64,000 nt of DNA. It comes from Bugula neritina (lineage: Eukaryota > Animalia > Bryozoa). The translations under genes were made by a program, and so were the position numbers. Shown here in pieces: positions 6,869 through 55,900 of the stretch. Position 1 is the first letter of the stretch. The number at the start of each line of letters is the position of its first letter. Where the stretch lies: the NCBI GenBank assembly GCA_964035545.1, contig OZ037770.1, positions 6,210,729 through 6,274,728 on the forward strand, in the 5' to 3' direction. The notes beneath the pieces were generated by a model. That model was given only the letters and a program-made list of their open reading frames with translations. It was not told the DNA's origin and searched no databases.

Positions 6869-7690
6869 TCATTGTTGGGCACGCCGGTGCTTGGCTTGGC
6901 ATGTACGCAGTTTCCGTTTCATCCGGCCTACTGATCCTTTTAGTTGGAAGAGCCCCGTCGTAGTATTAAGTAAATCCGGTGCTAACTGGGTGAATTCTTC
7001 TTGTAGTCGGAGGAGGCGTTCCTCTACTGTGGCCAGACAAACTGGGTCTGGGGACGGTGTCCGTCTGCGGCGCAAAGGGGGACTGGGAGACCTGGTTCGT
7101 CTCTTCATCGGGGCAGGGGAGACCTCTCCTTTTTCTGGATAAGCAAACTCCCCGGGGGTGTACACCATCTGAGGGCGGTCAGATATCAATGGGGATTGTT
7201 GTCTGGCATAGTCTAATACGCGTTGGAAACCCGAGGTCAGGACGGCCAACAACATTGCCTTCTTTACTAGGGGTCGTATCAGGGTGAGGAATTTCGGATA
7301 GAGCTTGACGTCGACCACATAATTCTCTCCAGAGAAACAGCCCGCCGCTTGATGTCTGGTGACAGGGTAGGGGTAAACATCATTGTATCCGCAGGGGCAG
7401 AATGTGAGTAGGAGATGGGCGTTGACATGTAGCTTCAAGGAGCGGTGAGAGGCACATTCTTCGCCACAAATCTGGCATCTCGTCCGTCCTCTGGACCCCC
7501 AGGCCGTTTCTATTTCTTCCGCTGTTTCTGGAGACACCCACCGCCAACGGCGGCGTAGTGGCTCGGGCTGGTCACCATTGGCATACTCCTCAGGATGCGG
7601 AGCGGGAAGTGCTCTATCCCGCACCCTGGTTGTAGCGGGTCGAGTGTAATCTGAAAAAGTTTCAACAGTGTTAATACAGTACACTGCCAT
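6869..7690 (-). CDS. Accessory ORF3 of element B: C2H2-type zinc finger + CxC-H-C finger + C-terminal coiled coil
   Basis: 273-aa ORF between pol and the 3' LTR; CQIC-x12-H-x3-H then TFCPCG...RHQ...C; homologous to 27205-28266. Confidence 0.8.
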   Translation of the reverse strand: MAVYCINTVETFSDYTRPATTRVRDRALPAPHPEEYANGDQPEPLRRRWRWVSPETAEEIETAWGSRGRTRCQICGEECASHRSLKLHVNAHLLLTFCPCGYNDVYPYPVTRHQAAGCFSGENYVVDVKLYPKFLTLIRPLVKKAMLLAVLTSGFQRVLDYARQQSPLISDRPQMVYTPGEFAYPEKGEVSPAPMKRRTRSPSPPLRRRRTPSPDPVCLATVEERLLRLQEEFTQLAPDLLNTTTGLFQLKGSVGRMKRKLRTCQAKHRRAQQ

Positions 7691-27204: not shown

Positions 27205-28266
27205 TTAACTGCGGGCCGCACGCTTCATGCGTTTAATAGACTCCTGTAAATATTTGAGTTCACTGGATGCAGCCTGCACCCGTGGGGCCAGTCTGTACAC
27301 TTCTTGCTCCAAGTCTTGTGCCCTAGCTTCTACTTCACGTAGGTTGCGGGCCCAGGGGAACGAGCGAGAGGAAGTCGGCTGTCTGTGTCTTTTCCGCTCT
27401 GAGGAAGGAAGGGGAGGAGGGAGTGTATACGCATTTGTGTCTACCCTCTGTAGTACGACACGAGGAAAGGTATGCGGTATGCGTAGAGGACTGTGAGGTG
27501 GAGAGTTAGTAGACTGTGTAGGTTTATCTGCGGCTCCAGAGATGATGGGTCGCGGGGAAGGGAAGCCTTGCTCCAGGCGAGATAGCCGAGCTGAGTCAGT
27601 GATGAGTGGTTTGATGGCGTTGAGAAAGGCAGGATAGGATGATTCGTCTACTTCATAGACATGCCCTTGATAACACTGCATAGTACGTTGGTGCCGCAGT
27701 AGGTAATCACGATTGTAGCTATATTCTCCGCAAGGGCAGAAAGTGGTGATGTAGTGTTGCGGCAAGTGTACTTTCAGTCTGCGGTGGGTTGTGAATCGCT
27801 GCTGGCAGAGGTTGCATTCACGATTACTCTCACCTCCTTGATGGGTCCTAATCTCTCTCTCTGTGGCAGGGGTAATCCAGTTGGAGGTTGCTTCCAACTG
27901 GGGTGGCAGTTGCCTGGTTGTAGAAGTTGTTGGGGCCGGCTCTGGGTCCCACGCCATCTCTAGAGAAGGCATGCCCGGAGAGACGGGCGCGAGTGTGTCT
28001 ACAAAAGTAGAATTATTGTTAGATCGCGGTGGATCTTTACAACATAATTCTAGTGACTGTCGGCCGTTGCTAGCCTGAGAGTCACAGCTTTTGGAATGCA
28101 CTCGAGGAACCGATGAATCATGTGTGGACTGACCAAGAACAGTGTCTAGCTCCAGGTCTAACAGACCGTCGGCCATTACAGTGTCTTCATCGTCATTCAC
28201 ATAAAACGTGGTTCCCAGTAATTCTGATTCAATCTGCTGAATTAGTTCAGAATTTACTGTTTCCAT
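27205..28266 (-). CDS. Accessory ORF3 of element C: C2H2-type zinc finger + CxC-H-C finger + coiled coil
   Basis: 353-aa ORF; CNLC-x12-H-x3-H, TFCPCG...RHQ...C; C-terminal heptads LREVEARAQDLEQEVYRLAP; homologous to 6869-7690. Confidence 0.82.
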   Translation of the reverse strand: METVNSELIQQIESELLGTTFYVNDDEDTVMADGLLDLELDTVLGQSTHDSSVPRVHSKSCDSQASNGRQSLELCCKDPPRSNNNSTFVDTLAPVSPGMPSLEMAWDPEPAPTTSTTRQLPPQLEATSNWITPATEREIRTHQGGESNRECNLCQQRFTTHRRLKVHLPQHYITTFCPCGEYSYNRDYLLRHQRTMQCYQGHVYEVDESSYPAFLNAIKPLITDSARLSRLEQGFPSPRPIISGAADKPTQSTNSPPHSPLRIPHTFPRVVLQRVDTNAYTLPPPLPSSERKRHRQPTSSRSFPWARNLREVEARAQDLEQEVYRLAPRVQAASSELKYLQESIKRMKRAARS

Positions 28267-34008: not shown

Positions 34009-36004
34009 GTATACTGAATGTAGGATAGTGAGATAGTTGTCTCCCCCAATGCATTTTCCTGCAATCACCAGCTAGAAAATTTGGAACAAGATATACAACT
34101 CAATGATTATTACAATGTGAATATATTATCATTATTACTATCATTAACTGACCCAGAAATGAAATCCAAAAACTAATTTTAGATGTGAGAAGAAAACTCT
34201 ACAGCTCAAGCAATAGACAGCGCATGACTTCTTGGCAACGCGAGTATTCCCTTTTCTTTTGCGTTTCCGGCTCACTTCCTAGCTTGAGCAGATCGTTACA
34301 AAATTGCTAACTTGTTACACCCACCATTCCTCATTATCGTAATTTCATTAAAGTTTTGCTAAGTTACTAGCTATAGTAACATGTAATAAAACAATTAGGC
34401 TACATAATTATTTCTAAATTGTGATCATATCTAGCGCCACGTACTCGTTTTGATTGTCAGTCAATGTTTTCTTTAAGTTAAAATTCAACTTAAAGTTTTA
34501 TGACTATCGGTATCACTATCACTATGCGTTTATCATTATCCATTATGATTATGGGTTCTGACTATAACTATAAGTATATCAATATGATTATGATTGTCAC
34601 TATAGTTTAGATTGCCATCATAATGACAATCATTTTCGTTATGATAATCACTTTTACCTTGTCAATATATCTATGAATATTAATATGGCATTATCATTGA
34701 GATGCACATAATTTTAAATGTAATGATAACCATTAACTTTAAGTTAAGGTCATATACCTATAGTTATAGTGATATCTATCAAATGATAGTGATAATATGT
34801 TTTTTTATTATCATAACGTGTCAATAGCAGAACCATCAATGATTTCCATTAAAGTATTTATCTGTTTAATAATTAGTGCTGCTATAACTATAAATTAGTA
34901 GTACTAATCGTAAATTTAATGATAATTTCATGCAAATTTCAATACGAATATGGGCGTATAGTAATTTTATGTTAATCCTAATCCTTATCATAAATCCATG
35001 ATTGTAATTATAATGTAATACACAATTTAAATATAATTGTGAATTATCAAAAGCAATATGAATATGATATTTTGTGATATTTTGATGTGATCTCTGTAGT
35101 AGTATGCATTGCAATAGTATTTTTTGATGCTGATAATGATTAATGACTATTGCTATGCCAATGATTAGCTTTACTATTTATATATTTTATATATAATCAC
35201 TATGCTAATTACTTTATAGTTGATCTGCACAACTGCAGTAATAACAGTGACAGCCATTATCAAATATGATTAATAGTTGTGACGAAGTTACACCATGGCA
35301 TTAACAATCAATTTGATATTATTGTTAAATAGACTTTTGGCTAACTTGAAAGTTTGGATTAAAGTCCTCTAGGGCAATCTCTTTACATTCCTCCTAGTAG
35401 TCAAGCCTTACAAGTAGTTGAATGTTTTTAAGGCATTCAGCAAACCACATCTGGTTAACTAGCCGCTAGCCTATGAAATACTACAAATCACCCCATTTTA
35501 CAAATAGCAAATTATAAATAATCTGATAATTTTCTAGCATGATGTAATGCTGCTGAAAGTAAACTTTTTGGTTTTTAAACAGTGTTTACAATATTACTTT
35601 GTTTACTTCTAATGTGGAAAATATTACTTCATTAATAGCTAATTTGTAAAATATTGTCCTTTTATATAATATACTGAAGGGAATGCTCAATCCACATGTT
35701 TGTTTAAACTGTATGTATCTGTCACAGAAAAATTCAATTTAAATAGGTTCTATTTGCATAAATTAATTACTAGTCAGCTATATTTGCTAGGCTCACTCAT
35801 TACATACTTGGACTGTTTTTGTGTTCATGTTTCGCTTTTTTCAGAGATAATCCTGTTATTTTTATAGATGAATGTATGTGTTTGGATGTGAAATAAGATG
35901 TCAAATCTGCTGCTTTAGCTTCCAACTGGTGGATCTCTGGGTAAGTGTATTTAAACTATTTATTCAACTACTGACTTGACTGATTATCACTGTGAATAGT
36001 TAGT

Positions 36005-36200
36005 ACTAATAGTCTACCTTGCATTAATAGTCTACCTTACACTAATATTCTACCTTACACTAATATTCTACCTTACACTAATATTCTACCTTGCACTAAT
36101 AGTCTACCTTACACTAATATTCTACCTTACACTAATAGTCTACCTTACACTAATATTCTACCTTGCACTAATATTCTACCTTACACTAATAATCTACTTT
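36005..36200. repeat. Minisatellite, 18-bp unit ACTAATA(T/G)TCTACCTT(A/G)C
   Basis: About 10 tandem copies. Confidence 0.88.
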
Positions 36201-37634
36201 GCATTGGTTTAGGTGACTGGAAAACACAGGTATTCCAGTAGTTGTGTAGGTATCTTCACCTCACTGTCATCACTCTAAACCCTCTTTTAGTAATCGTCTC
36301 TTCCCAGCAGTGAACATATATTAAGAGTAGAAATAGTAAAACTAGGTAAGTCTCTAATCAATACTACAGAATAGGGGATACAGACTACAAGTCTCTGTGT
36401 ATGTAACCTTGTTATATAATGATTCAAATTAGGTATAGCAGTGCATAAGTATGCTGAAGGGTATCATCTTTTATAGTTGGTTTAGCATGGGACAATGGCA
36501 GACCAACTGTGATAGTTTCTGTAGCTTTTCTTTCTTCATAATCAGTATGAGTGATGATCTCAAACTCCACGCTATTGGCTCTCTACAATTATTTCTCTAC
36601 AACAGAGTTTCTATAAATAGCTAATTCATGTTTGGTGTCATTCCACACAAGTCGCTATGCTAGCTTGACAAAACAGGAAAAATGCTTCTACCTATATGAA
36701 AAAAATAAAGAGTGTAGCTATAAATTGTATGTTTTATTGAGCTCAAATAAATGCAAAATATTTAATTTGAAAAAAGTGAACATAAGCTACTAGGCCACAT
36801 GTTTCAATAGCACTGCAGCTAGTAGAGGTCAGTAATCTTGTAGAGTTAGTCATGAGTGGTGGGATTTCTGCTTTTTAATTGTTTTTCACATCTCCTTAGA
36901 CTGCATAGCCTGTTTTATAGTCATGTTGTAGTGTTTGGTTTATTTATATAAGAGTTTGTAAATTGCTGGATGATATTATTTAATATAGCTTTGCTGCGTA
37001 ATAATTCTGCCTCTGAAGAATTGTTGAATGCAGTTTTTGATTCTGCTGTTACATTATTATAACTATCTGGCTTGTGGGAAGATAAATATTTTAAGAAGTC
37101 CTTTGAGATGAGTTCGTCTCATACCCCAAACTGTGTCAAGTTGAATGAAAACTGTTATTATAGTCAGCTTAAGTAAAAAACTATTCAATTTTTAAGCATT
37201 TGAATTAAAAGAATACCTTTATTAGCATTGATTATATACTCATATGTCATAAAATTTATAAGTATTTGAGAAAGTTGTCAAATGTTCTGATTCAAATTTG
37301 TTCACCTGGTGTGCTGTTTAGCCAGATCTGGACTCTTTTATGGGAATATCAGTTGAGTTTACAAAGGGTGAAAATAGCAATTAATCATATTCTACTACTT
37401 TATATTTAATAGCTGCGTACACCTATTTCAGGAAGTTGTGAAACATTTGATGATCTGGTGTATTGCTTATCCAGATATTCAATACATTTAGAAATATTAA
37501 TGTACTCTAAGAATATAATGAAGTTGATGAGTAATCATATTATTTTACTTCATATTTAATATCTGTTTTAGATGGAACTGCTACATTTTAGCTAAAACTT
37601 ATTACCAAGAAAGACAATCCACCATTTGGTAACT

Positions 37635-40600
37635 ATGGCTACTGGTGGTGAGTGAATTCAACAACTACTTTATTCAATTGTTTCTGGACAATAAAAATAT
37701 TCCAATACTGATAATAGGATGTAAATTATTATAATTGTATAATTGTGATTATTATATTTAGTCAACACTGCACAGGCTTCTCATATATGAGTAATACATC
37801 AAACTGTAGTTTTAGATGTAAAACTAATGTAAGATTATTATTTTGTAAGTTTTGGATTTTACATCAAATACTAATGTGAAGAACATGCATATGTTTGGTT
37901 GTATCCATCACTATTCATTGTTATCTTCATATGTATGTAATGTTTGTATGTCCAAATCTTTACTAAATGTATGTGAACCTTACAGTATGAAAGATACAGA
38001 TAAGTAAATGTAGATGTTATGTCAATACAATTTAAAGGATACTGATTAACACATTATCACTACATCCTATAGGCTACTTGTTAAGTCAACAAACAAACTA
38101 ATGCTTTGAAAAATTATATAAGATGTAAAATAATGCAAGCAGCTTGGTTAGATTTGTCTTATTGCAAAGTGATCAACACTGCTCTAGAAATTATACATAA
38201 AATGACTGATTATGAAGAGTCTAAAGCTACTCATTAAAATATGTGTAATTTAGTTATAGATATGAATATACACATCAACCATGTAATAAATATATTCAAA
38301 CCGTTGATGACAGGTGTCAGAATGATAGACACCACCTGCTAGCACTGTGTAATAATCACACTATCACTGTATTATGTTACAGAGAATATGAGAATCTTGT
38401 TTAGACATTCTGGACAGCCTCCTGTGAACTGGTGGAACATACAGTCTGCTAATACCAAATTGTATACTACTGCTGAGGTGAAATGTGAAGTTGGGAGTTA
38501 TGATATCACAGATCTGAAACTGGTAGGGAAACTTCCAAGTAACATTGGAGAGATTGCTGGTAAAGCCCTCTCTCTACGTGTTTATAACCTGACTGACAGG
38601 GCAAGTCTAGACAAGTGAGTGTCTATTAAAATAGCTGTGTGAATGTTAAATGAGTTTAGTTGTTTATTAAATAATAACCTATAATAGATGCTGAAGCTGT
38701 AGCATCCTTTTGCTGATAACATATTTATACAATATAATATACATAAAAATAAGGACATGTGCAACATTGTAACTATATACCAAGTAAGCTGGTTGTAGTA
38801 ATTAGAGGGTTTAAAGCTGCCTGTATACTGCTAGTTGATAGCATTAAATAAATCATGTTTTATGTAGCTGAAAACTGAAGTAATTCACAGTTTATAGTAG
38901 TATAGAAAAGGCTACTTTATGTCATAAACTACAAATATATTACATTAGAATTTAGTCATCAGATTAACTTACTTAGCGTGCAGAATGGGGCCTCATGTAC
39001 TGTAAGCTAACAGCTAACCTTGCATAATGAAGCTTTCTCTCCTCACCTACGACATAACTACAAAAACTCTTTGCTGTTCTATGCAACAATAAGTGTGTTT
39101 CTTGCATGTTTTACCTGGTTTGAATACACAAGAAATATATACAGTATATAATATATATTATCCTTATGCAGTAGACTAGATGTATCACACACTTTATATT
39201 ACAGTCTATGTAAGCTGACTCAGTTAGAGAAACTAGTCATAGGAGGAAATCCTCTCAACACAGTACCAGAAGTTGTGTCATCACTCACATCACTTAAAGA
39301 GTTGAATATGTGGAACTGTAGATTATCTACTCTACCTGAGAGGTTTGTGTGTCACAGTTTCAGTATTGTTTCAATCACTCAATAATTTACATATGTATAT
39401 GTGACCTCCCACCACAAAACAGGGAACGTTGGTCAGTTTTTCAAAATTGAGTTATTAATATAAAGTTAAAGAGCAGATCTTTGCAATCATTTTGCAATTT
39501 ATTTGAAGTCTCTAGTGCAGATAGAACTCGAGATATTGATATTCAAAAGCCTTGGCGTTTTTAAAACAATCAATTTACGTTTTTGAGAAATTCGCTTTTA
39601 AAGTAAGGAGGTCTGGAATAATTTATGGATTATTTGTTTACATTTGTCAAGCCTTAACAACGGGCCTTTTTATTCTAGCAAACTGGACAAATTTGGTATC
39701 AAAACATTTGTTCAAGTATGGGCTTTCAGCTCAACCAGTTTTTACGTTTCCCAAACAAAAAATTAGGTCAAAGATGGCCGCCAAACTTGTTGTAACTTTA
39801 TTTTCCCCGAATAGCTATTAAATTGTGATAACAGTTGAAAATTTTGCTACTTTCAGCACATATAAGGACCTTTAAGCACTTTTTTGCACCGACATTCATT
39901 TGAACCAACTATGCTAACTAGGTGTCGTATGAAACAAAATGGCAGCCATTTCCTGTTTTACGTTTGCTATTTCCCTCATTATTAATATCTCATGTAACAT
40001 GTCCAACTGTAGCTATTGAGCCATGCCATTCGATAGTATCAATTGTTTCATGCGTAAAAATCATATGAGAGAATCATTCAACTATTATGATATTATACAA
40101 AATTTATTCAGTCATACAGTTACAATGTAGAGTGATCAAAAGTTACACATAGGGAATCAGTTGAGATATTGAGTATCCATACAAGAAAATAAAGTATAAT
40201 TTATTTTTAATCTTCAAATCAATTATTATAAACAGATAAAAGTGTAGAAATTCAGCATAAATGAAACTTAAATTAATTCATATAGCAGAAAGACTGCTTA
40301 GGCCTCAGGTGATTCTTATGGTCTCTGAATCTTTGTCCTTGTTCTTCATAGCGTGAGTTTACAGAGTATAAGCACATAACCAAGAGTTTAATTGCTGCTA
40401 CAAACGATATTCCAGTAGTCAAAGTTAATAGATGCTGCTACTATAAATCTACCCTGTTCATCTATAGCCACTTAGACCTGCAATTATAATATTAAACTTA
40501 TTTTTAGATAATAAAAGAGAACAACAGTGCATTAGAAATTAAATCTGGCTATAAAATGTAATTGTTTTAACACCATTTAACTACTATATTACAGCAGCTA

Positions 40601-43600
40601 ATAATTATTGAGCAATTTCTCAACATTTAAGTTTATAGCGAGTTTGAAGGCACATTTGCAAACTAGTTATTTATAAAATTTTTGAGCATAATGAAATACT
40701 AGACACCTTTTTTCGAGTAAAGTTAGCAGAAGCTATAAGCTTGCAAGCGGTAGCTCTCCAAATGCAGGGAGTCCGGATCACAAGTGTAAGAATGATAGGT
40801 TATATGCAGCATGCTCTTGAGCTGTATAGGCGACATACCAAACAGCACCTCATCGACAAGTTCCATCATGTTGCCCTCACATCTTCACTTTCCTAAAATG
40901 AAAATAATGTTATATTCTTGAATAATAATCATGATGTAGTAATAATAATATTTTCTTTTCCTATTGCCATCAAAAATTAAGTCATTTGAATATTTAGCAT
41001 GTTTGAATCTGCAGTACTAAAGCAATGAGCTTGTATTTGAAAAATAAAACAACTAACTAATCAATATACTATTTAACATTCAATTCAAAGTGAGTAGACA
41101 GAGCTAGCCAAGTAGCAACAAAACCTACTAAATATAGCTACTGCAAAACCAATTTCAATTCAATTATTTACTTAAATATAAATAAATATAATAAATAAAT
41201 CAGCATAAGTAGTTGTAGTACTCCAATTCTATTTTGAAACTGGAAAGTCTTGCATGATAAAAGTGATGTATTCTAATAGTCATAGATAACTATAAGATTT
41301 AAACTAAGGGTAGCTGTAAGTGTTAGGCTGACAGTGACTAACAACAAGTGACTTGACTTTGACATCATTATTATTGTTTCACTCTTAAGGATCTTAATCA
41401 CTGTTATTATGAATATTATTATTATACTTGAACTTATTCAAATTGAATCACATTCGATATTTCAGTATGAGTATAGATTATGTTAAATATTCATATTCAA
41501 TATAAAAGTGGCGCTCCGCTGACTGTGGACCACTTAACATGCCCAGACTTAAAATTTCTATAAATAATCAATATGAAAATGAACATTTAATACTATGAAC
41601 TTCAAGTTAATGATAATAATAATATAATATTCAATAAGATTATCACAAGAACTAACTGAAAGAATTACTAATTGTATTAGTGTAATACTGAACCCTATTT
41701 AATAGTATTATCAATGTAAGTATGAGCATTTAATTTTGAATAAAAATAAAACACTCAATACTAAAAATTTCTAGTTAAAAATATCATTTTTTTAGCACCA
41801 GCTGTTAAAAATGAAAGTCAAGAAAGCATTTGACCTACATAGGCTAGAGTAAATCACTAAATCAAAATGAAAATGTAATACTATTATTATTTATTAATAC
41901 AAATAACGTAATAAGTATATAACTCGGATTGATTGATATTTTAATCATGATTATTAATATTATTATTAAATTCAAAAACTACAGCATTAGAAGTAGAAGT
42001 ATAACTTTAACTATAAGTATAAGTTAATAACTACTAGTAAATTATATAATTATTTAGTAGCGTAAATGAGCTATTTTCAGTATAATTACCTGCTTTGTAG
42101 TGATTTAATCATAAAGTCCAAAGATAAAGATCAATATTAAACTACAGCTAAGGAAATTAGTTGCGTTAAAAGCTAACTTAATCTTTGCAGCCAGCGCCAA
42201 AAATAGCTAATACTAAACTTAGTTTCAGAAGTAGGCTTCCTATCATGCGAGGAGAATGCAAGAGCTACCTTTATTAAACAAAGAATTATTTGTAGGATTC
42301 CGCGCTATGAAATGTTTTAATTTCATTTTCGTAATAGTAATGATAACTCCGAGTCAACTTGACTACGATCCGCCATTTCGAAGAAATATTTAATGCATAG
42401 TTACCAACTTTAGAGTTGATTTTGAGGCTGAAGGAATTAGCAATTGCTTGCGAAAATATGATATTTGAAATCCTTGAGTTTTTCTGTATAAGAAAATTTT
42501 AAAATTTGAAAACTGGCAAAAAATTTCAATTTTTGGTTTTTCAAAATTTAACCTTCATTTACTACACTTCATGAATGCCGCCAAGTTTCCGGTTTTGTCG
42601 CGAGGGGTCACATATGCTCACTGAATGGTGTTTATTAAACTTTTGCTCCAACTGGGATTTGAACCCAAGACCTCCAGCTTGCAAGCAGGCACACTAATCA
42701 TTACACCATGGGGCACTGGGTAAACTCAACACTACAGTGTTGATGTATCCTAACATATGTTGCCTTGCTAAAAACCATATTTTTGAGGTTATCTATAGTA
42801 GTTATAAGTCATAATCTGTAAATGACATAATTTGATGGCATGTCACAGCATATTATTATGCTTTAAAAAATTATGGTAATTATTGAAACAGTCTTTTAAT
42901 AGTAAAACTAGCTATTGCATGCTTCATAGCTTTATGCCTTGATTGCTTTAACTATCTGTTGCCCAACCAAATTGGTTTTTATAAAATATTTGGTTGAATA
43001 CACAAGCAATGTGTACAATATATTATATTATTATGATGCAGTAGACTAGATATATCACACACTTTATATTACAGTCTATGTCAGCTGACTCAGTTAGAGA
43101 CACTAGACATAGGATATAATCCCCTCAACACAGTACCAGAAGTTGTGTCATCACTCACATCACTCAAAGAGTTGCATATGTGGAACTGTGAATTATCTAC
43201 TCTACCTGAGAGGTTTGTGTGTCACAGGTTTTGTATTGTTTCTAGCATTCAATAATTTACATCTTCAAAATAACTTGGTTACAACAAAACTCTTTAAGCT
43301 GATTGTTCTGTATTCAGTTCCTTTTTTTCTGGGTGGCTTTTATAGTGTATGTGAAAGTTTAATGGTTTATTGAAAAATGATTGGAGTTCTAAATTATATT
43401 TAGTAGTTTTGTAAGTGTACTAGTGTCATGGTATGCTTTCCTTGTTTCAAAAACTCAGACATTCTTATATTTATATGCTTAAAAAGTAATATTAAAGTAT
43501 ATTATATTATATATTGCTGCGGTTAAAAATATAAAGTAAATTTTTCAAAGCCATGTAATAGTTTGTTATATCCTTGAGTAACACAGCTGTAAGCTATGGT

Positions 43601-46600
43601 ATTATATAGCATTCTATAGTAAACAGTTTTGTATTTAATAATGAAACGACCTCTTGTGGTGTCTTGTAACAGTAAGTGGATTACTTGAATTTTTTACCTG
43701 GTTTGAATACACAAAAAATGTATACAGTGTATATATTATCCTGATACAGTGGATTGCATATATCACACACTTTATATTACAGTCTGTGTCAGCTGACTCA
43801 GTTAGAGAAACTAGTCATAGGATGGAATCCTCTCAAAACTGTACCAGAAGTTTTGTCATCACTCACATCACTTAGAGAGTTGAATATGGGGAGCTGTGAA
43901 TTATCTACTCTGCCTGAGAGGTTTGTGTTTCTCAGACTTTGTATTGTTTAAAAATTCAGTAATTCACATATTTATGTGCATGCTAAATAATTTCAAATAG
44001 TACCCCATTATATATTACTAGGTTAAAATATAAAGGTATATAATCTGAAGTTTTTTTGAAGTTACATGTGTATTATAATCTCTCACATCTTGAAAATAAC
44101 ATAGTTTTAGAATTTGTCATAAAATATATATGAAAACCTTCATAATTTATAATAAAGCAGCCATTTATAGTGTATTAGTATTTATTTACTGTTGAATCCT
44201 CATTAGCTCTCTTGATTTATTAGCTCTGCATTTGAAATTTGCATTGCTGCCTAAACTTTATTCCTTGTTTGAATGCACAAGCAGCATATATATACAGTAT
44301 ATATTATTATAATACAGTAGACTACATTGTGCTAGTATTCACTACAAGTCAATGCAAAGGTTTGACAACACTGATTCTCTTTATTGATGACATGAAACAA
44401 GTACCCTGTTGAATAAAACATAAATTTTAATACTCAGGGTCACATGATCTATGATAAACTATAATATAAAAAAGTTGCAGTAACAGAAAGCAGGCACACA
44501 GAGTAATAATATTGTTTTTATGTATTATGTAATGACTATAATAATATTTACTTACAAATTTATTACCCTCTATTATAGTGTTACTAGCATGTAAATTATA
44601 TTATTTAAACCTGCAGGTACAAAAAAGACATATATAAATGAATTATATAATGTAGTCATATTATTACATCAACACTGTATATAAGATAAAATGACAAAAT
44701 CAATTATACCCATCATATTATATGTGGTACAAAACATGGTAACATACAGTTATGTTGAGATATGTCAGACTTTGCCTTTCATTACTAATGGCTAAAGAGT
44801 TGTGGGCTAAGGAACTTGTTGACTATCTGCTGTGTACACTCCTACTGACTGGCTTAGGTTAACAATATATTTTGTGATCAGTTACAGTATATTTGTCAAC
44901 TAATCCAAAGGTCAATTAACCAGTGTATAATGATACATAAATATATCACACAATTAATATGACAGTACCCTCACCTATTGCCTTTATGACTTGCTTGGGT
45001 AGTGGGTGGCTGCCAGAGGCCTACCTTAAATAAACTTTTCTACATAACTCTATCCTGAGGGTCTTCTTCATTGAAAAAACAGAATTGGTTATCTTTCCTG
45101 ATTGCGTCCTGCTGACTATGCTATGAGCATCTCGATTTCTCTTTACTCTAACTCTCATCACATGTACTCTTCTCAGGTCATCTCTCTTCTATATATATAT
45201 GTGTAAATACTGCCTAATTCTCTCGCTGGTTTTGCCATCTTTAAGACTGGTTCTCGCCTACGCTATGCTAAATCTTTCAGCAAGGTAATCGGTCAATGGC
45301 CATGTTTACACTCTATACAGTAGAACTAGTCATATTACTGTCTTGTGTATATATAAGCATCTTTACTTTCTTTCAAACTTAATTGTCAGCTCTCTTCATT
45401 TCTCCTTTATTGTCACATATTACCCCAGTCAGTTCTCTCCATTTATCCTAGGTGTTGCCAATGCGCACCTGTACCTCTACATTCTGCTTCCTGGTGAATT
45501 GTATTCTCCAGGTATTTGAATGTGGTATTTTGAATCAAAGTTGAATGTTCAAGTCTATCATATTCCATTATTTTGATATCATCGCTGCTTTTTCTGGTGA
45601 TAGGTACACAGTTTTATACCTGCTGACTTTTAGGCCGGCATCCTCTAATATCCTTTTCCAGTCTTCCAACACTTATTCTGCGATTTCTCTTCTCCCATCA
45701 CACAACACCAATTTACATACAGTATATATAATATGATGATTGTGGCTTATATCTGCTTGTTTTCTGTAGCTACCATAAGGCTGATTGCTAGATAATTGAA
45801 AGTGTTTCATATGAGCTTACTATAGTCACTATCACACAATACTATTTTGCTTAATTATTGTATACCAACTACCTCTAGTTTATGCTGGTAATAGAAATAT
45901 AATATTTTATTAGGATGCAGAGTCTACAGGAGCTACAGACACTAGACATAAATGGAAATAACTTCTCCAGATTACCATCTTCAGTGTGCAGATTGAGTAA
46001 TCTGCACACACTGGATATATCCAACAACAAATTCATGACAGCCTTGAACCCTGAGATACTACAGCTAACACGTCTTCACAGACTGAATACAGATAGTTGC
46101 AATGCTCTTACATCTCCTCCACTAGAAGTTCGTTGGAGAGGATTAGATGCTGTGCGACAATACTACACAGATTTGGCTAAGGGCACTGGTAGAAACTTGC
46201 CATTTGCTACAATAGCAGTGTTAGGGAACACCATGGCAGGTAAAACCAGTCTGATCAGAACATTACAGAGCACTGACAGGAAGAGAGTTCTGACTAAGAG
46301 AAGTTCGAATGCAGAGTATGATGAGACTACAAAGGTGTTTAATGTGGAAGAGGTGGAGGTGGATGGTACAACTCTTTGTCTCATAGATATGGGAGGCCAG
46401 GAGGTCTACCATATTACATACCATTTGACACTGAGACAAAATTGTGTACCGGTAATTGTAGTCAACATGGAGCAGTATGATCAGATTTCGAAAGCGTCTA
46501 CAGACAGAGAGGCTGTGAGAGAGTTGGCCTTTGACTTCGTCTCTCACCTCTATCTCGCTCATCCATCTCTTGGCCCACCTAAACTTGTCTTCACACACAA

Positions 46601-49600
46601 AGATAAGTTTCAAAATGAGAAGTGTCAACAAATAAAAGACGACTTTCTTAGAGTATCTGATGAACTGTGCAAAGAAATTCTTGATGAAGAGAAAGGCTCA
46701 GATGGGGAATTTGTGAAAATTCAGCATTTCAATTCATCGAATGGAAAGGTTTTTGCCAGTGAAGATATATATCAGATCGGAAAGGAAGACGACTATGCTG
46801 AGTACGACTTGATAAAGAGCTCCCTTCTAGAGAGCAGTCAGCATTTTGTTAAGCCTTTGCCTTTGATATGGGAAAAAGTGAATGAAAAAGTTTTGTCTTT
46901 ACCTGGAGCATTTTGCTCCTTTTGGTTTATTCTGCTTGTGTTAAAAAAAGACAGCTTTGAACTGAAGCCAAGCCAGCTAGATACTATTCTCACATACATG
47001 CATGACTGCGGCAAAGTATTGTGGTACAAGAAAATTGATGCACTCAGGCCATACATCTTTCACAAGATTTCTGAAGTAACCAAACTGTTGTGTGTTTTGT
47101 ATCACCATGACCCAAAAATTTGGCAGAGTCGGGTTGATCAGTTCAAATCATATCATTCCATAGAAGGAGTCAGGATTGAAAAGCAAGACTTTGAAAAATC
47201 TGTCAATTGCTTCAAGACTAGTGGCATGATGATGCAACCTCTTCTAACATATTTGATTGCGGACGAAACTTCCTTCAATAGTTCTGGTGATGTTGAAATT
47301 GCTGTTTCATTGCTCAGAACATTTCGTTTGCTGTATGGTCCTTTGGAAAATGATGCTAAGGTATCATACTACATTGTTCCACAGTTTGCCAAGGAGCTAT
47401 ATTGTACTCCCTACACATCATCGAAAGACCTGTTACTTGTTGCTGAGACACAGTTTAATGGTCTGGCATTACCACAGCATGTCTACCACCAAATGACTGT
47501 GGGTTTGCTAGAACTGTTTCCAGAAGAGTTTGCTGTGAGAAGGGTAAAGAATAATGGCGTTAATGTTTACCAAGATCAAATATACACACAGCTGATACAT
47601 GACTGCAAAGCAAGAAGAGTCTTACTCTATGTGTCATCTGATGCTGCTCACATTTCCAGGATGTGGGAGAAACTCATTTCAACCAACAACAACATCCTCA
47701 GACATGTGATGGAAACTTGGACTGCTAGTCGACCAGTCACTGCCTGCTTCTGTGCTCACTGCGTCACGCTTGGGGTTTCTTGCCCTGAAAAAATAATTCG
47801 TCCTAATTGGTGTTTTCGCTCCTTAAGCAACCCATCACCAGATGTAAAGAAGTGTAGTGGATCTTCAACAACATTGTGTAACAATGAGGAAGTGCCCAGT
47901 GCTTTAATCTACCCATGTATGTTAATTCAGAAATATTTTTACTCATACTTTTTTTTCATAAAACATCAATGCAGTTTTAAATGTTGAAAGTATACAAGGC
48001 CAATTAGAGAAGTTAGTTTAAATTATGCACTCCTAATTCGAGTTCATCAAAACTATACTAAACAACAAACATTGCCTAATAACGTTTACAAATATTTTAA
48101 CAGTTTAAACTATTCATTTAAAACCTGGATTTCTAAAATATATATATATGTCATATCCTTTAGTTGAGTCAATATTAAGATTTGGTAGTAAAACCTATCT
48201 AGTTATAGTTAAAGTGAAGGTTGTGAGGTAATTTATCTAATCAGTTTTATTCAGGTGAGGCGTTGTCAGAAACAGAAATTCAGAAGTTGGAGACGCTGTT
48301 GGTAAAGCTCAAACTACGCAGAATAGAGCAGAAACACTTTACTGGTAAACTTCTACAGTAGTTAATTCTTAGCTTCTTTTTTCTGGATAGAGTTTTGTTT
48401 GAGAAAAAAACAAATGACTTGAAGAAACTGTTTATTAAATTCAAACGACTGCATGAATAGTATAGAAAGTTTGATCATGTAAACTTCTTCGACGAGCTTT
48501 GCAAAGCCATTTCTGACAAAATCTAATGTTTATTTGTATGCAATGAACAAATTTCTTGTGTTTGTCAAATATTGACAATAAAATCTTGTGACTGCAGAGG
48601 TTGATGATCTAAGTGATCTCTCTGATGACGATGAAGTTTTACAGACTGGTGAAGAGAAGGACAAGGATATGAAGTTGATAAAACTCAAGTTAAAGCCAAC
48701 CAGCAACCTAAAGATTAAACAACTCTTTCCAAATACTGTCAAGGTTGTTATATCAGTTAATAACCGTTTTAGCCATGATGGTTTGGCCACTCAATACACT
48801 ATAGTGGTATAATTATTCCTTTATTCCCACAGCTTGATAATAAGAATACCTGAATGTAGAATACGTGCTTTCTTTACAAAGTATAAGTTTTATTGTAATA
48901 TAATTTGATAATTTTGTGCTTTGGAGAAATTGGCTCATAACATTTATTTAGTGAAATTTCATGTCACCACTGTACATGGTATTCTAAACATTCTTGCCTC
49001 CAGGTGTTCAATATGACCAGAAACAGAGGAAAAGCTCTGATCATAAACAACAAGAATTTTGTTGAAAGACCAGACTTATGCAGGGAAGGTTCAGATGCTG
49101 ATGTTGAGAACATGTCTGTCATGTTGAAATCTCTCAAGTTTGATGTTGAGACACACACAGACCTAAAGGCAGAGGTATAATATTTTAGAATGACAGCAAT
49201 AGTAGTGAACTATATACATGGTAGCATGCTATTTCTTTAAAGAAGTAAAAATGCTTTTTGTGTGAAACTGTATTCAAACTTTTAGGGTCAAGCTTTTTCT
49301 TCAGTATTTGCTTAACTTACACACTGTCCTAATATTACTTAAGGTTTGCTAAAATGGGTGCACATTTTGGCATACTTGCTTGTGAGTCAATATTTATAGT
49401 TATCAATAGTCATACTAATAGAAGTGAATGCTCTCATTTACCTGTATGGTTATTATTACTTACACAGCTCAACTTGGCTGACGTATTAGCTTTTCAACTG
49501 AAAATACCTATTACTATTGAAACAAGATTTAGCAACCTCCTAATATTGTCAAGTTGCAGTTATGCTATAAATGGCTGATGGGCCAGGATTATATAAAAAA

Positions 49601-50999
49601 AATGCAGCACTTCTTAGAGATATAATAACATTTTATAAAATAAATGTAGGAAATGCTGTCTGCTGTGAAGTCCGAGATAAAAAATGAAAGAAACAACGGC
49701 TTGGGCTGTCACATGCTGGTAGTCATGAGTCACGGTGAAGAAGATAACTGCATCTATGGAACTGACCTTGAGAAGGTCAATCTTACAGACTTGTATGATT
49801 TACTCGCTCCTCTAAGTCTAAAGCGTAAACCTACAGTTGTCATCCTAGAAGCTTGCAGTGGAGGTAATTACAGCGTTTTATAGAAAATGTTCATTTTTAG
49901 TTGAGTTGTGGAAGTAAGACAAAGATCCTTGAAAAGCGCTCTCTGTACTGATTGAATTCCTTTTTTGCTCAAGATGCAAGCCTAAAAAAATTTTTGTTGC
50001 AGCAAACATTGAGGTGAATCCAGACAGATCTGGTCTTGCAGCAGCTCAAGAAGAAGAAACTGAATCTGTCTCTTCTACACATTCTGAATCTGATGATGAT
50101 ATTGTATATCCTGAAACACCCAGTGTAATAAGACCCATCAGACCTGTCTTACCACCAGCACCTAGAATAGAAGAGCGGTGGACCAGACTGGATGTTGATA
50201 ATCTTCTTGTTCTAAAGAGTAGCGTCTGCTGTACGTATACTAAATAGTGATTAGCTAGTTTTACATGTGCACAGTTGCAGTTATTTAGAAAATTGTCTCT
50301 CCTTAATCCAATCTTGTAAACTTGTCTTTAAAAAGTATATCAAACAAAGACTTTTAAAATATACTGAGCTTGCTTTCATTACACCATAATTTTGGCTGCA
50401 TTTAATTTTATTGTAGCATCAAAGAGACATCCTGAATATGGATCTCCTATGATTAGAGCTCTCGTATCTTCAATCTACAAACATGCCTGTCACCGTGATC
50501 TCTACACCATCTTCATGCAGGTAAGTCTAGAATGATAATTTTGCTGATTTCTGGTTTCATACAAAAATATTTCTTTTATTTCAGCTGTTTATTATTCATA
50601 TTTTTTGATTGACATTTTTCTATCAGCCTGTTGTGAAGGTTTACAGACTGTCTTAGTCTCACTGCAATGATATACCTTATATTTTTAACTGTAGCAGACA
50701 ACTCTCAAGATTTTGCTGCTTAGATTTGATACAAATAAGACGGTATATTCCAGCAGCTTAGAGTTGTAAATATTTATCTCATCTGGAAGTATATTCGTAC
50801 ACAATCTTACTAGTCATTACTTGCTCTACAGGTACAGACTAAACTAGTGAAGAAACTATATGCAGATGAAGATTCAGAGAGAAGCAGAAATTTGGTTGTA
50901 ATCTGGAAGACTCTTCCTCCCCGTAAAAGACTTTACCTGTTTCCTGGCTTTGATGGGTTTGGTGAAGAGGAAAAACCCAGTAGAGAGGATCATTCCTAA
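37635..50999 (+). CDS. LRR-Roc-COR-like-caspase fusion protein (Roco family GTPase with C-terminal peptidase C14), about 1260 aa
   Basis: Exons 37635-37647, 38383-38614, 39205-39342, 43075-43212, 43783-43920, 45914-47916, 48255-48344, 48598-48743, 49004-49174, 49650-49863, 50003-50230, 50417-50520 and 50832-50999; all GT-AG with compatible phases, total 3783 nt. Roc motifs GNTMAGKTS, DMGGQ, FTHKD; caspase motifs RGKALIINNKNF, REGSDAD, MSHG, LEACSG, SKRH...GS, KRLYLFPG. Confidence 0.88.
39205..39342 (+). repeat. LRR exon cassette 1 (138 nt, two 23-aa LRRs, phase 2-2)
   Basis: LCKLTQLEKLVIGGNPLNTVPEVVSSLTSLKELNMWNCRLSTLPE; AG/GT bounded. Confidence 0.92.
39397..42615. mobile_element. Putative non-autonomous DNA transposon with imperfect TIRs, in an LRR intron
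   Basis: Left end ATATGTGACCTCCCACCACAAAACAGGGAAC vs reverse complement of the right end ATATGTGACCCCTCGCGACAAAACCGGAAAC; no intact ORF. Confidence 0.65.
42644..42714 (-). other. tRNA-derived SINE head or tRNA pseudogene
   Basis: Minus strand has A-box-like TGGTGTAATGA and B-box GGTTCAAATCC; the anticodon arm is non-canonical. Confidence 0.6.
43075..43212 (+). repeat. LRR exon cassette 2 (138 nt, phase 2-2)
   Basis: LCQLTQLETLDIGYNPLNTVPEVVSSLTSLKELHMWNCELSTLPE. Confidence 0.92.
43783..43920 (+). repeat. LRR exon cassette 3 (138 nt, phase 2-2)
   Basis: LCQLTQLEKLVIGWNPLKTVPEVLSSLTSLRELNMGSCELSTLPE. Confidence 0.92.
44985..45715 (-). mobile_element. Degenerate 5'-truncated RTE-clade LINE fragment
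   Basis: Minus-strand peptides FKYL.., VQVRI...KWRELTGVICD and KTVI..VLLY...TWPL, typical of the region after the RTE reverse transcriptase. Confidence 0.65.
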
Positions 51000-52971
51000 G
51001 ATTTATCACATAATCTAACTCATAGGATTTGCCCTCTTTGGGTATCCAGCATGATCTGCTGAATTGAACAAACAATTAGTTTAAGTTAATGGATCACGAA
51101 TAGTCATTCTATTAGTTTAATTGACAAAGGATTTTCACTCTTATACATACTTCTCTATAATTATATGTTTATGTTAATCTGACAGTTGGTAAGGCTGTCT
51201 ATCTGGTGGATTCTTTATCTACTATTTATATATCTTATAATGTTGTGAACTAGTATATCATACTGATTTATATATTGGCTGATTTATTGTTGAGTGTGCT
51301 TCAATTACTTTGTACTGGATGTTTTTTCACTGCTTCTCTTATGCCCTATGAAGCTTTGACAATGCTTAGCTTTGCACTTACTTTATTCAATTAAAATTTA
51401 TAATAATAATGTTTACATGCATTATTATTAGATAATTATTTTGCTGACTTTTTATTCAAGTTTTATATCATATTTCTTCAATAAATTTCATTGAACTACA
51501 CATTTTGAAAGTCAATTTTTGTATGAGTTTAAGTAGTTTCACTCAAAGGAAATGAAAGTTTTGTCTAGGTTTTGGTGTTAAAACTAGAATCTGGTAGTAA
51601 ATGTGACACGATGATGGAAGATTTTTCAGCTGTAAAACATACTTTTAAGTTGTACCTAAAAACAAACAGAGTTAATCTGAAAAGAATTAATCTCACATAG
51701 TAAACTGTATTTTATGTAACCTAGATTAAACTATTTGGTAATACTTTATTTGAATTAGCCCTTGAGTCAAAATAACATAATTAGCAAATACATTCAACAT
51801 TTCCAACACATAAAAATACCCCAAATAGTAGAGGAATATAAACCTTGATCCTTGCAATTGTTTTATCTCAATTTGTTGGTGCATGAGTACTAAATAAAGA
51901 GAAAACTATTCAACTGCCACTCCTCAAGCGTGTAGCCTCCTAGCTAATTGTCACTAGCTCTCATCCCAATACATTACTAGTCGTAGCCTGTAGTGTAAAA
52001 GATACTGGCTCAGCTGATTAGCTATTGCAGTTATCAATATTGCAACAGTCGATCTGCTGCAAGCATATGCATTGTGCTATAATTTGTAATCAGGTAGAAG
52101 AAAGATGGAGTTGTCTTCTCTCGACATTGAGTTGTCCTTTCGATATACACGATGGGGGGAGGAGGGCACAACGCTTACAATATCATACCCACAGTGTTAT
52201 AAACCATAGCTTTAACATGTCTACCTCTTGTAGATGCAATTTTATAAACGCATGTTTGCTTTTATTTGAAATCAACTCTTACACTTTTTAGATAGGTTCA
52301 TTAGAGTTTTTGACATTTAATATTTTGAATTCCTGCATATGTTTGATTAAGAATGATATTTATGTACTTGTGCTAAACTTTATAATTTATCCATCGGAAT
52401 TATTGGCTTACAAAATGTATAACTTTGCTAACATCAGATGCAATGGTAGGCCACAAGCTGAAGAGTTGAATTGTAACCTTCATACTGGCTTCTTGTTATA
52501 TGAATGCTCAGCGCAAACATGAAACTTATTTCTTGCTGGCTGCTAGAAGACTGAAGAGCTCATGAATACTGGTATATGACATTACTATGTTGTCACAGCT
52601 GAAGAAGTGGGAAATTGTATCAACTTATTTATTAACCAATCAAGTTCATAACGCAGCTATGTCATTGAACTGATAGAAGGAATGAAAGTGAGGGTATATT
52701 TCAAATTAGTTTTATTAAAATAGGATACAAAAAACAAGGAAGAATTAATGCAACGGATATACATACTTTTAACTATCAGGTGAAAGTCAACTAGTTTTAA
52801 AACTATCAGATAGTTTTACAAAAAAAACTTCTAACTACAAACTAAGAGCTAATGCTGTAGTGGACGGTGTAAAGGTGATGTCAACAATACTTGGTGTCTG
52901 TCATATGATGTATATATGTTACAAGAGTGTCAAACTGTGTGTTATATAACATTTTATATTATGTAACTCCA

Positions 52972-55900
52972 TCAGTCACCTTCCAGAGATACTTCTACAA
53001 CAGAGTATGAGTATATATTACAGTGTGAGATGTACTTTACAATATGATATGTATATTATATAGATAGTGTATACTTAGTATCATATATACTGTATACTTA
53101 GTATCATATATACTATATACTTAGTATTATATATACTGTATACTTAGTATTATATATACTGTATACTTAGTATCATATATACTGTATACTTAGTATCATA
53201 TATATACTGTATACTTAGTATCATATATATACTGTATACTTAGTATCATATATACTGTATACTTAGTATCATATATACTGTATACTTAGTATCATATATA
53301 CTATATACATAGTATCATATATACTGTATACTTAGTATCATATATACTGTATACTTAGTATCATATATACTGTATACTTAGTGTCATATATACTGTATAC
53401 ACAGTAACATATATACTATATACATAGTATCATATATACTGTATACATAGCATTACATCAGAGGCTGATATATATCTTACCATACCTGAAACTTGAGGCG
53501 GATAATGTAGTCCAAGGTCTAATTGAACACCTTCAGTAGGAAGGGCAGGCTCATGAACCTCCTCCATTTTACTAAATTCAGCTGGAGAGATGTGGGCTAC
53601 GCTGCCATCTAAAGTATTAATACATAAATATTTCCTAGTTCATGATCTACTAATAAGAGTTGTGTCCCTTCAGCAGTTACATACGTCAACCTCAATATCA
53701 GGGAGCAGTCTCACTAAAAGCCTGGCCTCACCATTGTGAGAATCACATGAAATCGTCTACTTGACACAAAAACATCCGTACGAGAAAATCTGAGGGAATT
53801 CAAACGAAATCGTCCTCGTTGGCTGTACACACCGATGACTATGGACAAAAAATCACAATAGAGGATAAGTACCACTTGATTGTTCAATAGAATTTTAGCA
53901 ACAATAATTATTTCATTTCTACAACTTTTCTCTATTTGGTAATTTCCTGCTGTTTTTACCTTGCGCAAAACTCATTCACGGACTATTTATTATGTGTTTT
54001 GTCTGACGAGAGTGCGGCTCGTCATAACGAGAGGATAACTCACAAAAAACGTCACCTGATTTCGTTTGATTCTCCGTTCGCAAGGCCAGGCTTTAAAACT
54101 TTTACAGTTTTACTGCAATGTGAAATTGCAACTACACTATAGACTTGTTCTTTTAGTGAATAACGGGATTTATATCCTAGCTGCCACTTTGGCATTGCTC
54201 AGTAGCCAAAACCACAAATATATGCTTTGAGGTTTATTTTTCGAATGTTATCCTGAACCAGTAGTTTTTTGAAATGCTAATTTAAGCTTGGCATCAGCAA
54301 TATGTCTATCACCAAATTGAAAAGGTGTATAGCATTGTTGCATATTGCATGTAAAGCAGTCAAACTGTAAATTTCAGTTGAAGCATGTACCTGCTAATGG
54401 GGCACAACTCTTGATTGTAAATTGACATCGCAAACATACATTGTAGGAAAGGAGTATATCATATATAAATACTTTCTTGACTGTTAAATGGATAAGTTGA
54501 TGAATGTGTTATATATATATTCAAATAACTGATAGAGTTGTGAAGATATAAACAGTAGGAAGAAGAAGTAAAATTAGACCAGCAGGTAATGTAATGCAGT
54601 AAACCAAAAAATAATTCTGAACATATTCTCTAAGATAATTACCAGATACTTGTTGGGAGGTTTCCTCCACATCCCCGCCTTCTGACTTCTCAATTGCAAC
54701 CTCAACTACAGTGTCCTGTATGCTGTTGTGTAACATATTAGAGTTGAGTCTGGCTAACAGAGCTGCTGTCTCGGGAGTAAGAGCTGAGCTGGTGTGGATG
54801 CTGCCATCTGACAGCTGTGTCTTCACCCTTGAGATCATGTGACCTGGGAGAGAAATCATGCGACCTGGTAGAGAGAGATCATGTGACTTCATAGAGAGCA
54901 ATCATGTGATCTGGGAAAGAGAGATCATGTGACTGATTGATACTAACCTGACTCTTGACCTTCATGAGCGAGTGTAACTGTCACAGTCTCTAGATGGGGG
55001 CCTATATGTGACGCCCAGTCTTCAGTCCATACTCGATCCTGCTCTAATGCTAAAGTATCCACACTGCCCTACGAAGTAATTTATATACATAGTTACTATG
55101 TGTGCACATAAAAATAACTTCAAAAAACAGACATGCTTTTTAGTGCTAATTTGCCAGCAAGTGCAGATTGCTGAAGTCACATGCTGTCTAAAACAGTAGC
55201 GCTGACACGGCACCACCAGCCAACCACGAGAAATCTTCTAACCTAATTACCAATCGCAGTAGGTTTATCATTTAAGTTCCAATCGCAGAAAAAAAAATAA
55301 TGACGGCACAAGGTGAACATAGTCTCATAGCTGTCAATGCGACATGCATGAAATAGTATAAAGGCGTAGCCAATCATGAGAAATCATATTATCTACTTGC
55401 CCATCACAGAAACTGTTACAATTTCACAAACAACACCACATGTATAGCAGTACCTCTTTGAGAGGCAGCACGCCACTATCAATATCACGGAGAGCTGTGT
55501 GGATGTGATTCTTCAGATCGCTGACAGTCGGGAAGAAACTCAAGTCATGTCTCACTGGAGGCTCCTCATTACTGAACAAATCTTTCTCCACGTATTTCCT
55601 GTATGAGAATATCAGGTGGTGTGAGTGTGGCTCAGTAGCTTTGATATTTTGATCTTATAGATGGTAGGCTATACAAGTGTTAAATAGCCTCTCGCTCTTT
55701 AACACTTTTAAAATACTCTAACGTCATCAGACAACTGAACGGTAAGGCAGTTTCAAAATGAAACACAACAAACATGTTTAAAACAATTGTGACAAAAACC
55801 AACAACACTCAAGTTTTTATAATACAAAATGTCCGGCAAATTATTCTACTAGAAGTATTTATGAGACAATGTTGTAGCCCTAATACTGATAGAAAGCGTT

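Follow-up and report, generated by a model that had tools for sequence, protein, structure and literature searches.

Roco proteins of the MFHAS1/MASL1 type consist of a leucine-rich repeat (LRR)-Roc-COR core without a kinase, and have no catalytic effector after COR. Here, we characterized a gene of the bryozoan Bugula neritina that shares this core but adds a complete C-terminal caspase, exists in ~110 copies and contains cassette LRR exons. It lies within a 64,000-nt stretch of contig OZ037770.1 (positions 6,210,729 to 6,274,728; hereafter the window). Its nearest named relatives are labeled as MFHAS1 homologues, and the top atlas matches of a related model from the bryozoan Watersipora subatra include a chordate MFHA1 cluster. 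We consider the product probably (at a probability of roughly 0.62) to be an adaptor-free, cytosolic immune receptor-protease, one of about 110 such paralogues in this animal.

In logic only, this arrangement resembles the NLR inflammasome and the Apaf-1 apoptosome, each of which combines a repeat sensor, a nucleotide switch and a proximity-activated caspase. Those assemblies distribute a STAND ATPase and death-fold adaptors over different chains, whereas the window gene encodes a GTPase with a fused caspase, and its nucleotide-binding domain is a Ras-like Roc rather than the NACHT or NB-ARC ATPase of NLR/STAND proteins. For amphioxus, "LRRs-caspase" hybrids have been proposed to connect recognition directly with apoptosis (Zhang et al., 2008; PMC2575513). 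The accessible parts of that paper make no mention of Roc-COR, and the identity of its models with the amphioxus Roc-COR-caspases discussed below could not be confirmed. In bacteria, at least 24 effector types, including caspase, occur on LRR-AP-GTPase-COR proteins, which are predicted to be counter-invader systems, and entries with the order LRR, AP-GTPase, COR and caspase are listed among them (e.g., OQX07365.1; Kaur et al., 2021; PMC8195603). The window gene has in common with these systems its architecture, fast-evolving LRRs and a variable effector slot. However, they are prokaryotic and predicted only, while the bryozoan gene is spliced and combines an animal Roc-COR with an animal-type caspase. 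Finally, brown algae have an expanded set of LRR-Roc-COR candidate immune receptors with symmetric phase-2 LRR exons under diversifying selection (PMC11378527). The algal exons are 72 nt long and encode one repeat, as opposed to the 138-nt two-repeat exons of the bryozoan family, and the algal proteins have no caspase, although a few carry an IPR009003 peptidase.

In the literature searched, outside which lie many subscription papers, we found no experimental study of an animal Roc-COR-caspase or of the bryozoan expansion, and no paper on bryozoan caspase expansions; the accessible parts of Roco reviews describe no caspase-fused Roco. A preliminary description of this DNA, made without searches, had stated that its author knew of no characterized protein of this architecture. 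That statement holds for experimental work, but the architecture itself is already on record in bacteria (Kaur et al., 2021; PMC8195603) and in amphioxus and Watersipora models, as is the LRRs-caspase idea (Zhang et al., 2008; PMC2575513). In this Roco protein the effector slot is filled by a caspase, a known design that is greatly expanded in this bryozoan.

Gene Structure and Domain Organization

The gene comprises 13 exons (Table 1), as described earlier, which join into 3783 nt encoding 1260 aa plus a terminal stop; the positions given before for junctions 47916/48255, 48344/48598 and 48743/49004 hold exactly in this gene model. All 12 introns are GT-AG, phases agree throughout, and the joined frame has no internal stops. 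The product runs from an N-terminal cap through ~9 LRRs, Roc, COR and a linker to the caspase p20 and p10. The diagnostic motifs reported previously were all found in place: GNTMAGKTS at aa 324, DMGGQ at 378, THKD at 447, SHG at 1050 and EACSG at 1090. Pfam and fold searches were done exon by exon, and the joined model was used for the frame check, alignments and trees. Pfam recognized LRRs in exons 3-6, Roc (E 7e-7) and, weakly, COR-A (E 0.03). Exon 2 gave no Pfam family and uninformative atlas matches, and it has 59 matches in the genome (33-80% identity), many of them upstream of Roc-COR exons, and its module is probably an LRR cap with a degenerate repeat.

The product has no hydrophobic segment above a Kyte-Doolittle (KD) value of 1.9 and neither a signal nor a membrane segment; a membrane receptor was rejected on this basis, and the protein is predicted to be cytosolic. 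Likewise, no Pfam match to a death-fold prodomain (CARD/DED) was obtained in the exon stretches scanned, in keeping with the earlier observation that none is visible, and a hidden death fold was rejected on these grounds.

Exon 6 was modeled with the help of 61 relatives (mean pLDDT, the predicted local distance difference test score, of 92). The best structural matches of this model were LRRK1, LRRK2 and the Roco protein of C. tepidum, with LRRK1 and C. tepidum Roco heading the Foldseek hits. It aligned over its full length with LRRK1 and with residues 1241-1857 of LRRK2 (Z 23.9) and, through residues 316-667, with the isolated C. tepidum COR domain (3dpt; Z 15.5, 274 residues aligned). Because of these alignments, the region after Roc, previously termed only COR-like, is confirmed in the structural model as a true COR. 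With G1, G3 and G4 motifs present and COR directly after Roc, the protein is a Roco. G3 and G4 are invariant in 27 paralogues. The GTPase motifs are intact; GTP binding and hydrolysis and a nucleotide-driven monomer-dimer cycle are putative.

A Large Paralogous Family with a Diversifying LRR Face

Searches of the B. neritina genome (216 Mb, 321 contigs) gave 111 matches to the Roc core (~110 genes), clustered mainly on contigs 1, 6 and 7, and 130 matches to the caspase catalytic exon (exon 10). Sixty-six Roc-COR exons could be scored in full and are 59-93% identical to the window copy. Pairing of exons by their coordinates, matched by eye, placed a same-strand caspase catalytic exon downstream of all 66, within 8 kb in 63 cases and at ~11-16 kb in three. 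Only three of the 66 copies, the close paralogues L015, L019 and L022, have stops inside exon 6, which is consistent with birth-and-death turnover. Within the contig 6 cluster, exon 10 is 72-100% identical.

Exons 3-5 are two-LRR cassettes that were duplicated together with their intron flanks. Such symmetric phase-2 exons vary in number, with three here and >12 in some paralogues, and 723 candidate cassettes occur across the genome in tandem arrays at ~0.6-kb spacing. Intron 5 contains two remnants of the cassette upstream flank (44273-44330 and 44938-44966) with no LRR exon behind them, which suggests lost cassette copies.

Selection was estimated as the ratio of non-synonymous to synonymous substitution (dN/dS). 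Fifteen positions on the concave LRR face of exon 6 were selected in advance from the LRR pattern; there, the pooled pairwise dN/dS among 27 intact paralogues was 1.50 (bootstrap 0.99-2.53), or 1.92 (1.26-2.72) when dS was taken from the first 100 codons. None of 20,000 random 15-site sets reached the observed proportion of non-synonymous differences (pN). Other LRR positions gave 0.34, compared with 0.22-0.26 for Roc, COR and the Cys motif at the C terminus. The cassette exons (n = 10) showed the same pattern, at 1.78 for concave positions vs. 0.46 elsewhere, and caspase exon 9 gave 0.28 (11 paralogues). These values support diversifying selection on a sensor-like LRR face and purifying selection on Roc-COR and exon 9.

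It is conceivable that the same machine answers not to microbes but to non-self from other colonies (allorecognition), or to polypide regression or some other developmental or stress cue. Any recognition arms race would be in line with diversifying LRR faces and tandem expansion, and bryozoans are colonial animals whose zooids are recycled by programmed degeneration. However, a developmental cue would not push dN/dS above 1, a predicted cytosolic protein is better suited to intracellular invaders than to contact at the cell surface, and the alternative effectors of related proteins (GT4-conflict, TIR, CHAT) are conflict effectors. We therefore regard a non-microbial input as unlikely, albeit the strongest of the alternatives to a microbial receptor.

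The Caspase Domain

In an alignment with 59 other caspases, the residues equivalent to the catalytic and S1 positions of caspase-1 are retained: Arg179 (R993), His237 (H1051), Cys285 (C1092), Arg341 (R1174) and Ser347 (S1180). The layout is that of a caspase, with a His-Cys dyad, p20, linker and p10, and both Pfam C14 and PDB matches agree. The pentapeptide departs from the canonical QACxG: the equivalent of Gln283 is Glu here (EACSG), while all 59 other rows have Gln. Among the paralogues, EAC occurs at ~15 and HAC at ~12, with QAC, EVC and ETC elsewhere; Cys is kept in every motif seen. A loose scan for the catalytic pattern performed at chance level (368 vs. 306 in the control); of its matches, those at known exon-10 positions alone were considered. 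The HACSG subclade, with His at the Gln283 position, occupies contig 1 (34.2-35.1 Mb) and contig 3 (4.51 Mb). Since EAC recurs at so many loci, always with the Cys, it is by sequence characteristic of a subclade rather than a defect of a single copy. Asp-specific proteolysis by the domain is putative, and several Asp residues in the acidic inter-subunit linker could serve for self-cleavage.

The substitution nevertheless raises the possibility that the caspases of the window copy and of its EAC subclade have low activity or non-Asp targets, and act as scaffolds, decoys or cFLIP-like partners of the QAC paralogues. The Glu and His replacements and the EVC and ETC variants, at a position that is Gln in every other caspase aligned, are what such a role would predict. 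On the other hand, the window copy still has the catalytic His and Cys and the counterparts of Arg179, Arg341 and Ser347, no paralogue motif seen has lost the Cys, exon 10 is well conserved in the contig 6 cluster, and exon 9 is under purifying selection. These observations make a non-proteolytic or redirected role improbable, and slightly more so than a non-microbial input.

Proposed Mechanism

Initiator caspases are activated by dimerization. In the mechanism that we propose, the ligand of the LRR face would be either a molecule from a microbe or a host protein altered by a pathogen, and its binding would shift Roc-COR to another nucleotide and oligomer state. COR would then bring two caspase domains together, and the paired caspases would cleave the acidic inter-subunit linker and subsequently their substrates, leading to cell death or immune signaling.

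The direction of the switch may be the reverse of a GTP-on scheme. The best-studied Roc-COR protein, C. tepidum Roco, is monomeric in its GTP-bound form, whereas its nucleotide-free and GDP-bound forms are dimers (PMC5714945); for human MASL1, toxicity increases when GTP is lost (PMC3995007). Because of these two precedents, we favor, by a narrow margin over the opposite, a GTP-bound monomer as the resting (off) state and a GDP-bound or empty COR dimer as the active state. If so, a P-loop mutant may be hyperactive rather than dead. The preliminary description had proposed that ligand binding by the LRR could gate Roc-COR dimerization and switch on the attached caspase with no adaptor. This proposal is supported in part, by the single chain, the diversifying LRR, intact Roc motifs, COR, the caspase dyad and the lack of any adaptor domain.

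Several observations weigh against an adaptor-free receptor-protease. Ligand binding, dimerization, proteolysis and induction are all putative steps. If the COR dimer were constitutive, some further brake would be required, and none was identified. Replacement of Gln283 by Glu could lower or change activity. The dN/dS values are pooled pairwise estimates among related paralogues rather than site models, and the bootstrap lower bound touches 1 in one version. Finally, in a Watersipora stand-in model (P0025:440-1419; pLDDT 79, predicted TM-score [pTM] 0.62), Roc-COR and caspase fold separately, with the caspase on a flexible low-pLDDT linker of ~80 aa that leaves its structural coupling to COR putative.

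The corresponding COR-caspase linker of the window gene is 79 aa long and partly acidic. It is flexible and contains several Asp, and activation could accordingly bypass Roc-COR gating altogether: a pathogen or host protease might cut the linker or the LRR, or Roc-COR might merely target the protein to a membrane or scaffold, with the freed caspase acting alone. Prodomain-less effector caspases work by such release. Yet purifying selection on Roc G1-G4 and on COR is strong throughout the paralogues, and the fusion is retained in every one of the 66 copies and in a second bryozoan, so that we consider gating-independent activation quite improbable.

In its broadest form, the receptor-protease reading would make the family an NLR-like GTPase repertoire. 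About 110 single-chain Roco-caspases would take their specificity from cassette LRR exons and have their output retuned at the S1 pocket (Q/E/H); ligand would fire the caspase through a GDP-bound or empty Roc-COR dimer, with neither STAND ATPase nor adaptor, and the design would have been assembled separately in bryozoans, amphioxus and bacteria. We put this full version forward only tentatively, as somewhat more likely to fail than to hold in all its parts. If true, animals would have a pattern-recognition family based on Roc-COR in place of NACHT/NB-ARC, and one that carries its executioner in the same polypeptide. Self-cleavage of the caspase, or cell death, would offer a direct readout for a question shared with LRRK2 and other Rocos, namely which nucleotide and oligomer state signals and whether LRR ligands gate it, and the ~110 diversifying genes would be an entry point into bryozoan immunity.

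Evidence from Transcripts

RNA-type contigs from four runs of four studies were placed on 45300-51200 at 90% likeness; run X3 is recorded as RNA-Seq, and the other runs were presumed to be RNA. The contigs represent alleles or close paralogues and none covers the entire gene; exons 1-5 and the start codon lie outside the placement. They sit mainly on exons and skip the introns, showing that the family is expressed. Two of the joins singled out for checking, 47916/48255 and 48743/49004, were recovered. The former (GT..AG) is exact in runs X2 and X3, and a paralogue variant of it was seen in X1, X2 and X9; the latter occurs in all four runs. For the third, 48344/48598, exons 7 and 8 are indeed joined in contigs, but as paralogue variants (48344 to 48602/48605) rather than exactly. 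Each junction after 49004 was found in at least one run, and a single 396-nt contig extends from the end of COR through the end of exon 8.

Genomic comparison agrees. The phase-1 GT donor equivalent to 47916 is kept in 30 of 30 paralogous loci, whereas the read-through tail from this donor to the next stop varies among them from 4 to 28 codons. Because contigs cross the COR-caspase junctions and the donor is conserved while the tail is not, a transcript ending at the stop at 47987, with the caspase as a separate gene, was rejected. A wrongly joined pair of neighbors, a Roco and a caspase, for which one might cite the ATG that exon 6 has of its own at 45915, in frame to that stop, and the splitting of some Watersipora RefSeq models into Roco-only and caspase-only proteins, is extremely improbable in light of the spliced contigs spanning 47916/48255 and onward, the conserved donor, and the complete fusions among Watersipora and amphioxus models.

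Relatives and Origin

The nearest named proteins belong to W. subatra, and several have the full LRR-Roc-COR-caspase order (XP_067947674.1, XP_067948342.1). These models are identical in architecture to the window gene and fall in the same clade, but they are automatic annotations, share only 30-39% identity with it and retain QACxG. The same domain order is found in amphioxus (XP_002614028.1 and about 12 more models), although in separate clades and with swapped tails: amphioxus Roc-CORs also bear GT4, OTU or Death tails. Across relatives, the slot after COR holds GT4, OTU, CARD, Death, TIR or CHAT. Some amphioxus proteins have stacked tails or other effectors after LRR-Roc-COR, namely caspase-Death-GT4 (P0172), OTU-GT4 (P0117) and OTU (P0070). 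A 916-aa protein from a metagenome contig of the European Nucleotide Archive (ENA; P0175) has an N-terminal PF12534 membrane-type region, which we take to be LRRC8/pannexin-like, together with LRRs and a caspase, without Roc.

A tree was built for each domain; both were quick and have long branches. The Roc-COR tree was rooted on bacterial-type rows, and its MFHAS1 homologues are invertebrate only, with no vertebrate MFHAS1. In both trees the window and Watersipora genes form one clade, with a Shimodaira-Hasegawa-like approximate likelihood ratio test (SH-aLRT) value of 100, and the amphioxus fusions form clades separate from it. The bryozoan Roc-CORs are nearer to Lingula Rocos (support 93, not starred), on which no caspase was seen. 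An approximately unbiased (AU) test rejected a clade of only caspase-bearing Roc-CORs (p 3e-60), but a grouping of the bryozoan genes with every amphioxus Roco (p 0.096) was not rejected, and neither was a single clade for the fused caspases (p 0.22). Separate origins of the bryozoan and amphioxus fusions are therefore favored by these trees, but not proven. As for the bacterial systems, the likeness is one of design and not of recent transfer, which is ruled out since the gene is spliced, with 12 spliceosomal introns, its Roc-COR groups with animal Rocos, and its protease is of the animal p20/p10 type.

Features of the Gene and Surrounding Sequence

Table 1. Exons and motifs of the Roco-caspase gene (positions in the window).
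Feature	Position	Strand	Description
Exon 1	37635-37647	+	13 nt; putative start, MATG, phase 1; in frame with exon 2, GT donor; least certain exon
Exon 2	38383-38614	+	Conserved 77-aa N-terminal module
Exon 3	39205-39342	+	138-nt phase 2-2 cassette, two LRRs; Pfam LRR_4 E 3e-8
Exon 4	43075-43212	+	Second 138-nt LRR cassette; Pfam LRR_4 E 1e-9; 91% identity to exon 3 across 239 nt including flanks
Exon 5	43783-43920	+	Third 138-nt LRR cassette; Pfam LRR_4 E 2e-5; 82% identity including flanks
Exon 6	45914-47916	+	2003 nt; three LRRs, Roc GTPase, COR-A, COR-B
Exon 6, G1	46224-46250	+	GTPase motif
Exon 6, G3	46386-46400	+	GTPase motif
Exon 6, G4	46593-46604	+	GTPase motif
Exon 6, CxxC...C	47751-47762	+	End of COR-B
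Exon 7	48255-48344	+	Short post-COR linker; found at 27/30 paralogous loci
Exon 8	48598-48743	+	Acidic linker and start of caspase region; found at 28/30 paralogous loci
Exon 9	49004-49174	+	First part of caspase p20, with R993 (caspase-1 Arg179 equivalent); Peptidase_C14 E 5e-10
Exon 10	49650-49863	+	Catalytic His 49731-49733 and Cys 49854-49856 (in EACSG); Peptidase_C14 E 4e-7; PDB matches CED-3 and caspases
Exon 11	50003-50230	+	Acidic inter-subunit linker (Asp at aa 1102, 1125-1127, 1158, 1160), start of p10
Exon 12	50417-50520	+	p10 with R1174, S1180 (Arg341, Ser347 equivalents)
Exon 13	50832-50999	+	End of p10, stop TAA

The LRR cassette array is interrupted in intron 3 by a 3.2-kb insertion (39397-42615) with imperfect terminal inverted repeats (27/36 nt) and no open reading frame (ORF) >93 aa, which looks like a non-autonomous DNA transposon. 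Adjoining it on the minus strand (~42640-42715) is a tRNA-like sequence, with an A and B box look by eye and not called by ARAGORN, that is probably the head of a short interspersed nuclear element (SINE). Upstream of the gene, 1-34010 is occupied by long terminal repeat (LTR) retrotransposons, with Ty3/gypsy-like pol remains at ~9-12.6, 15-19.3 and 28.7-32.6 kb, a DUF1759 gag-like ORF at 2489-4438, and near-identical direct repeats (419-932/5119-5632, 6343-6578/13538-13773, 26629-26934/33703-34008 and 6-388/20570-20953). Minus-strand ORFs of 273 and 353 aa (6869-7690 and 27205-28266), neither with a Pfam match, lie at the 3′ ends of gypsy-like elements. Minisatellites flank the gene, with an 18-nt unit upstream (35969-36239) and a 23-nt unit downstream (52985-53507).

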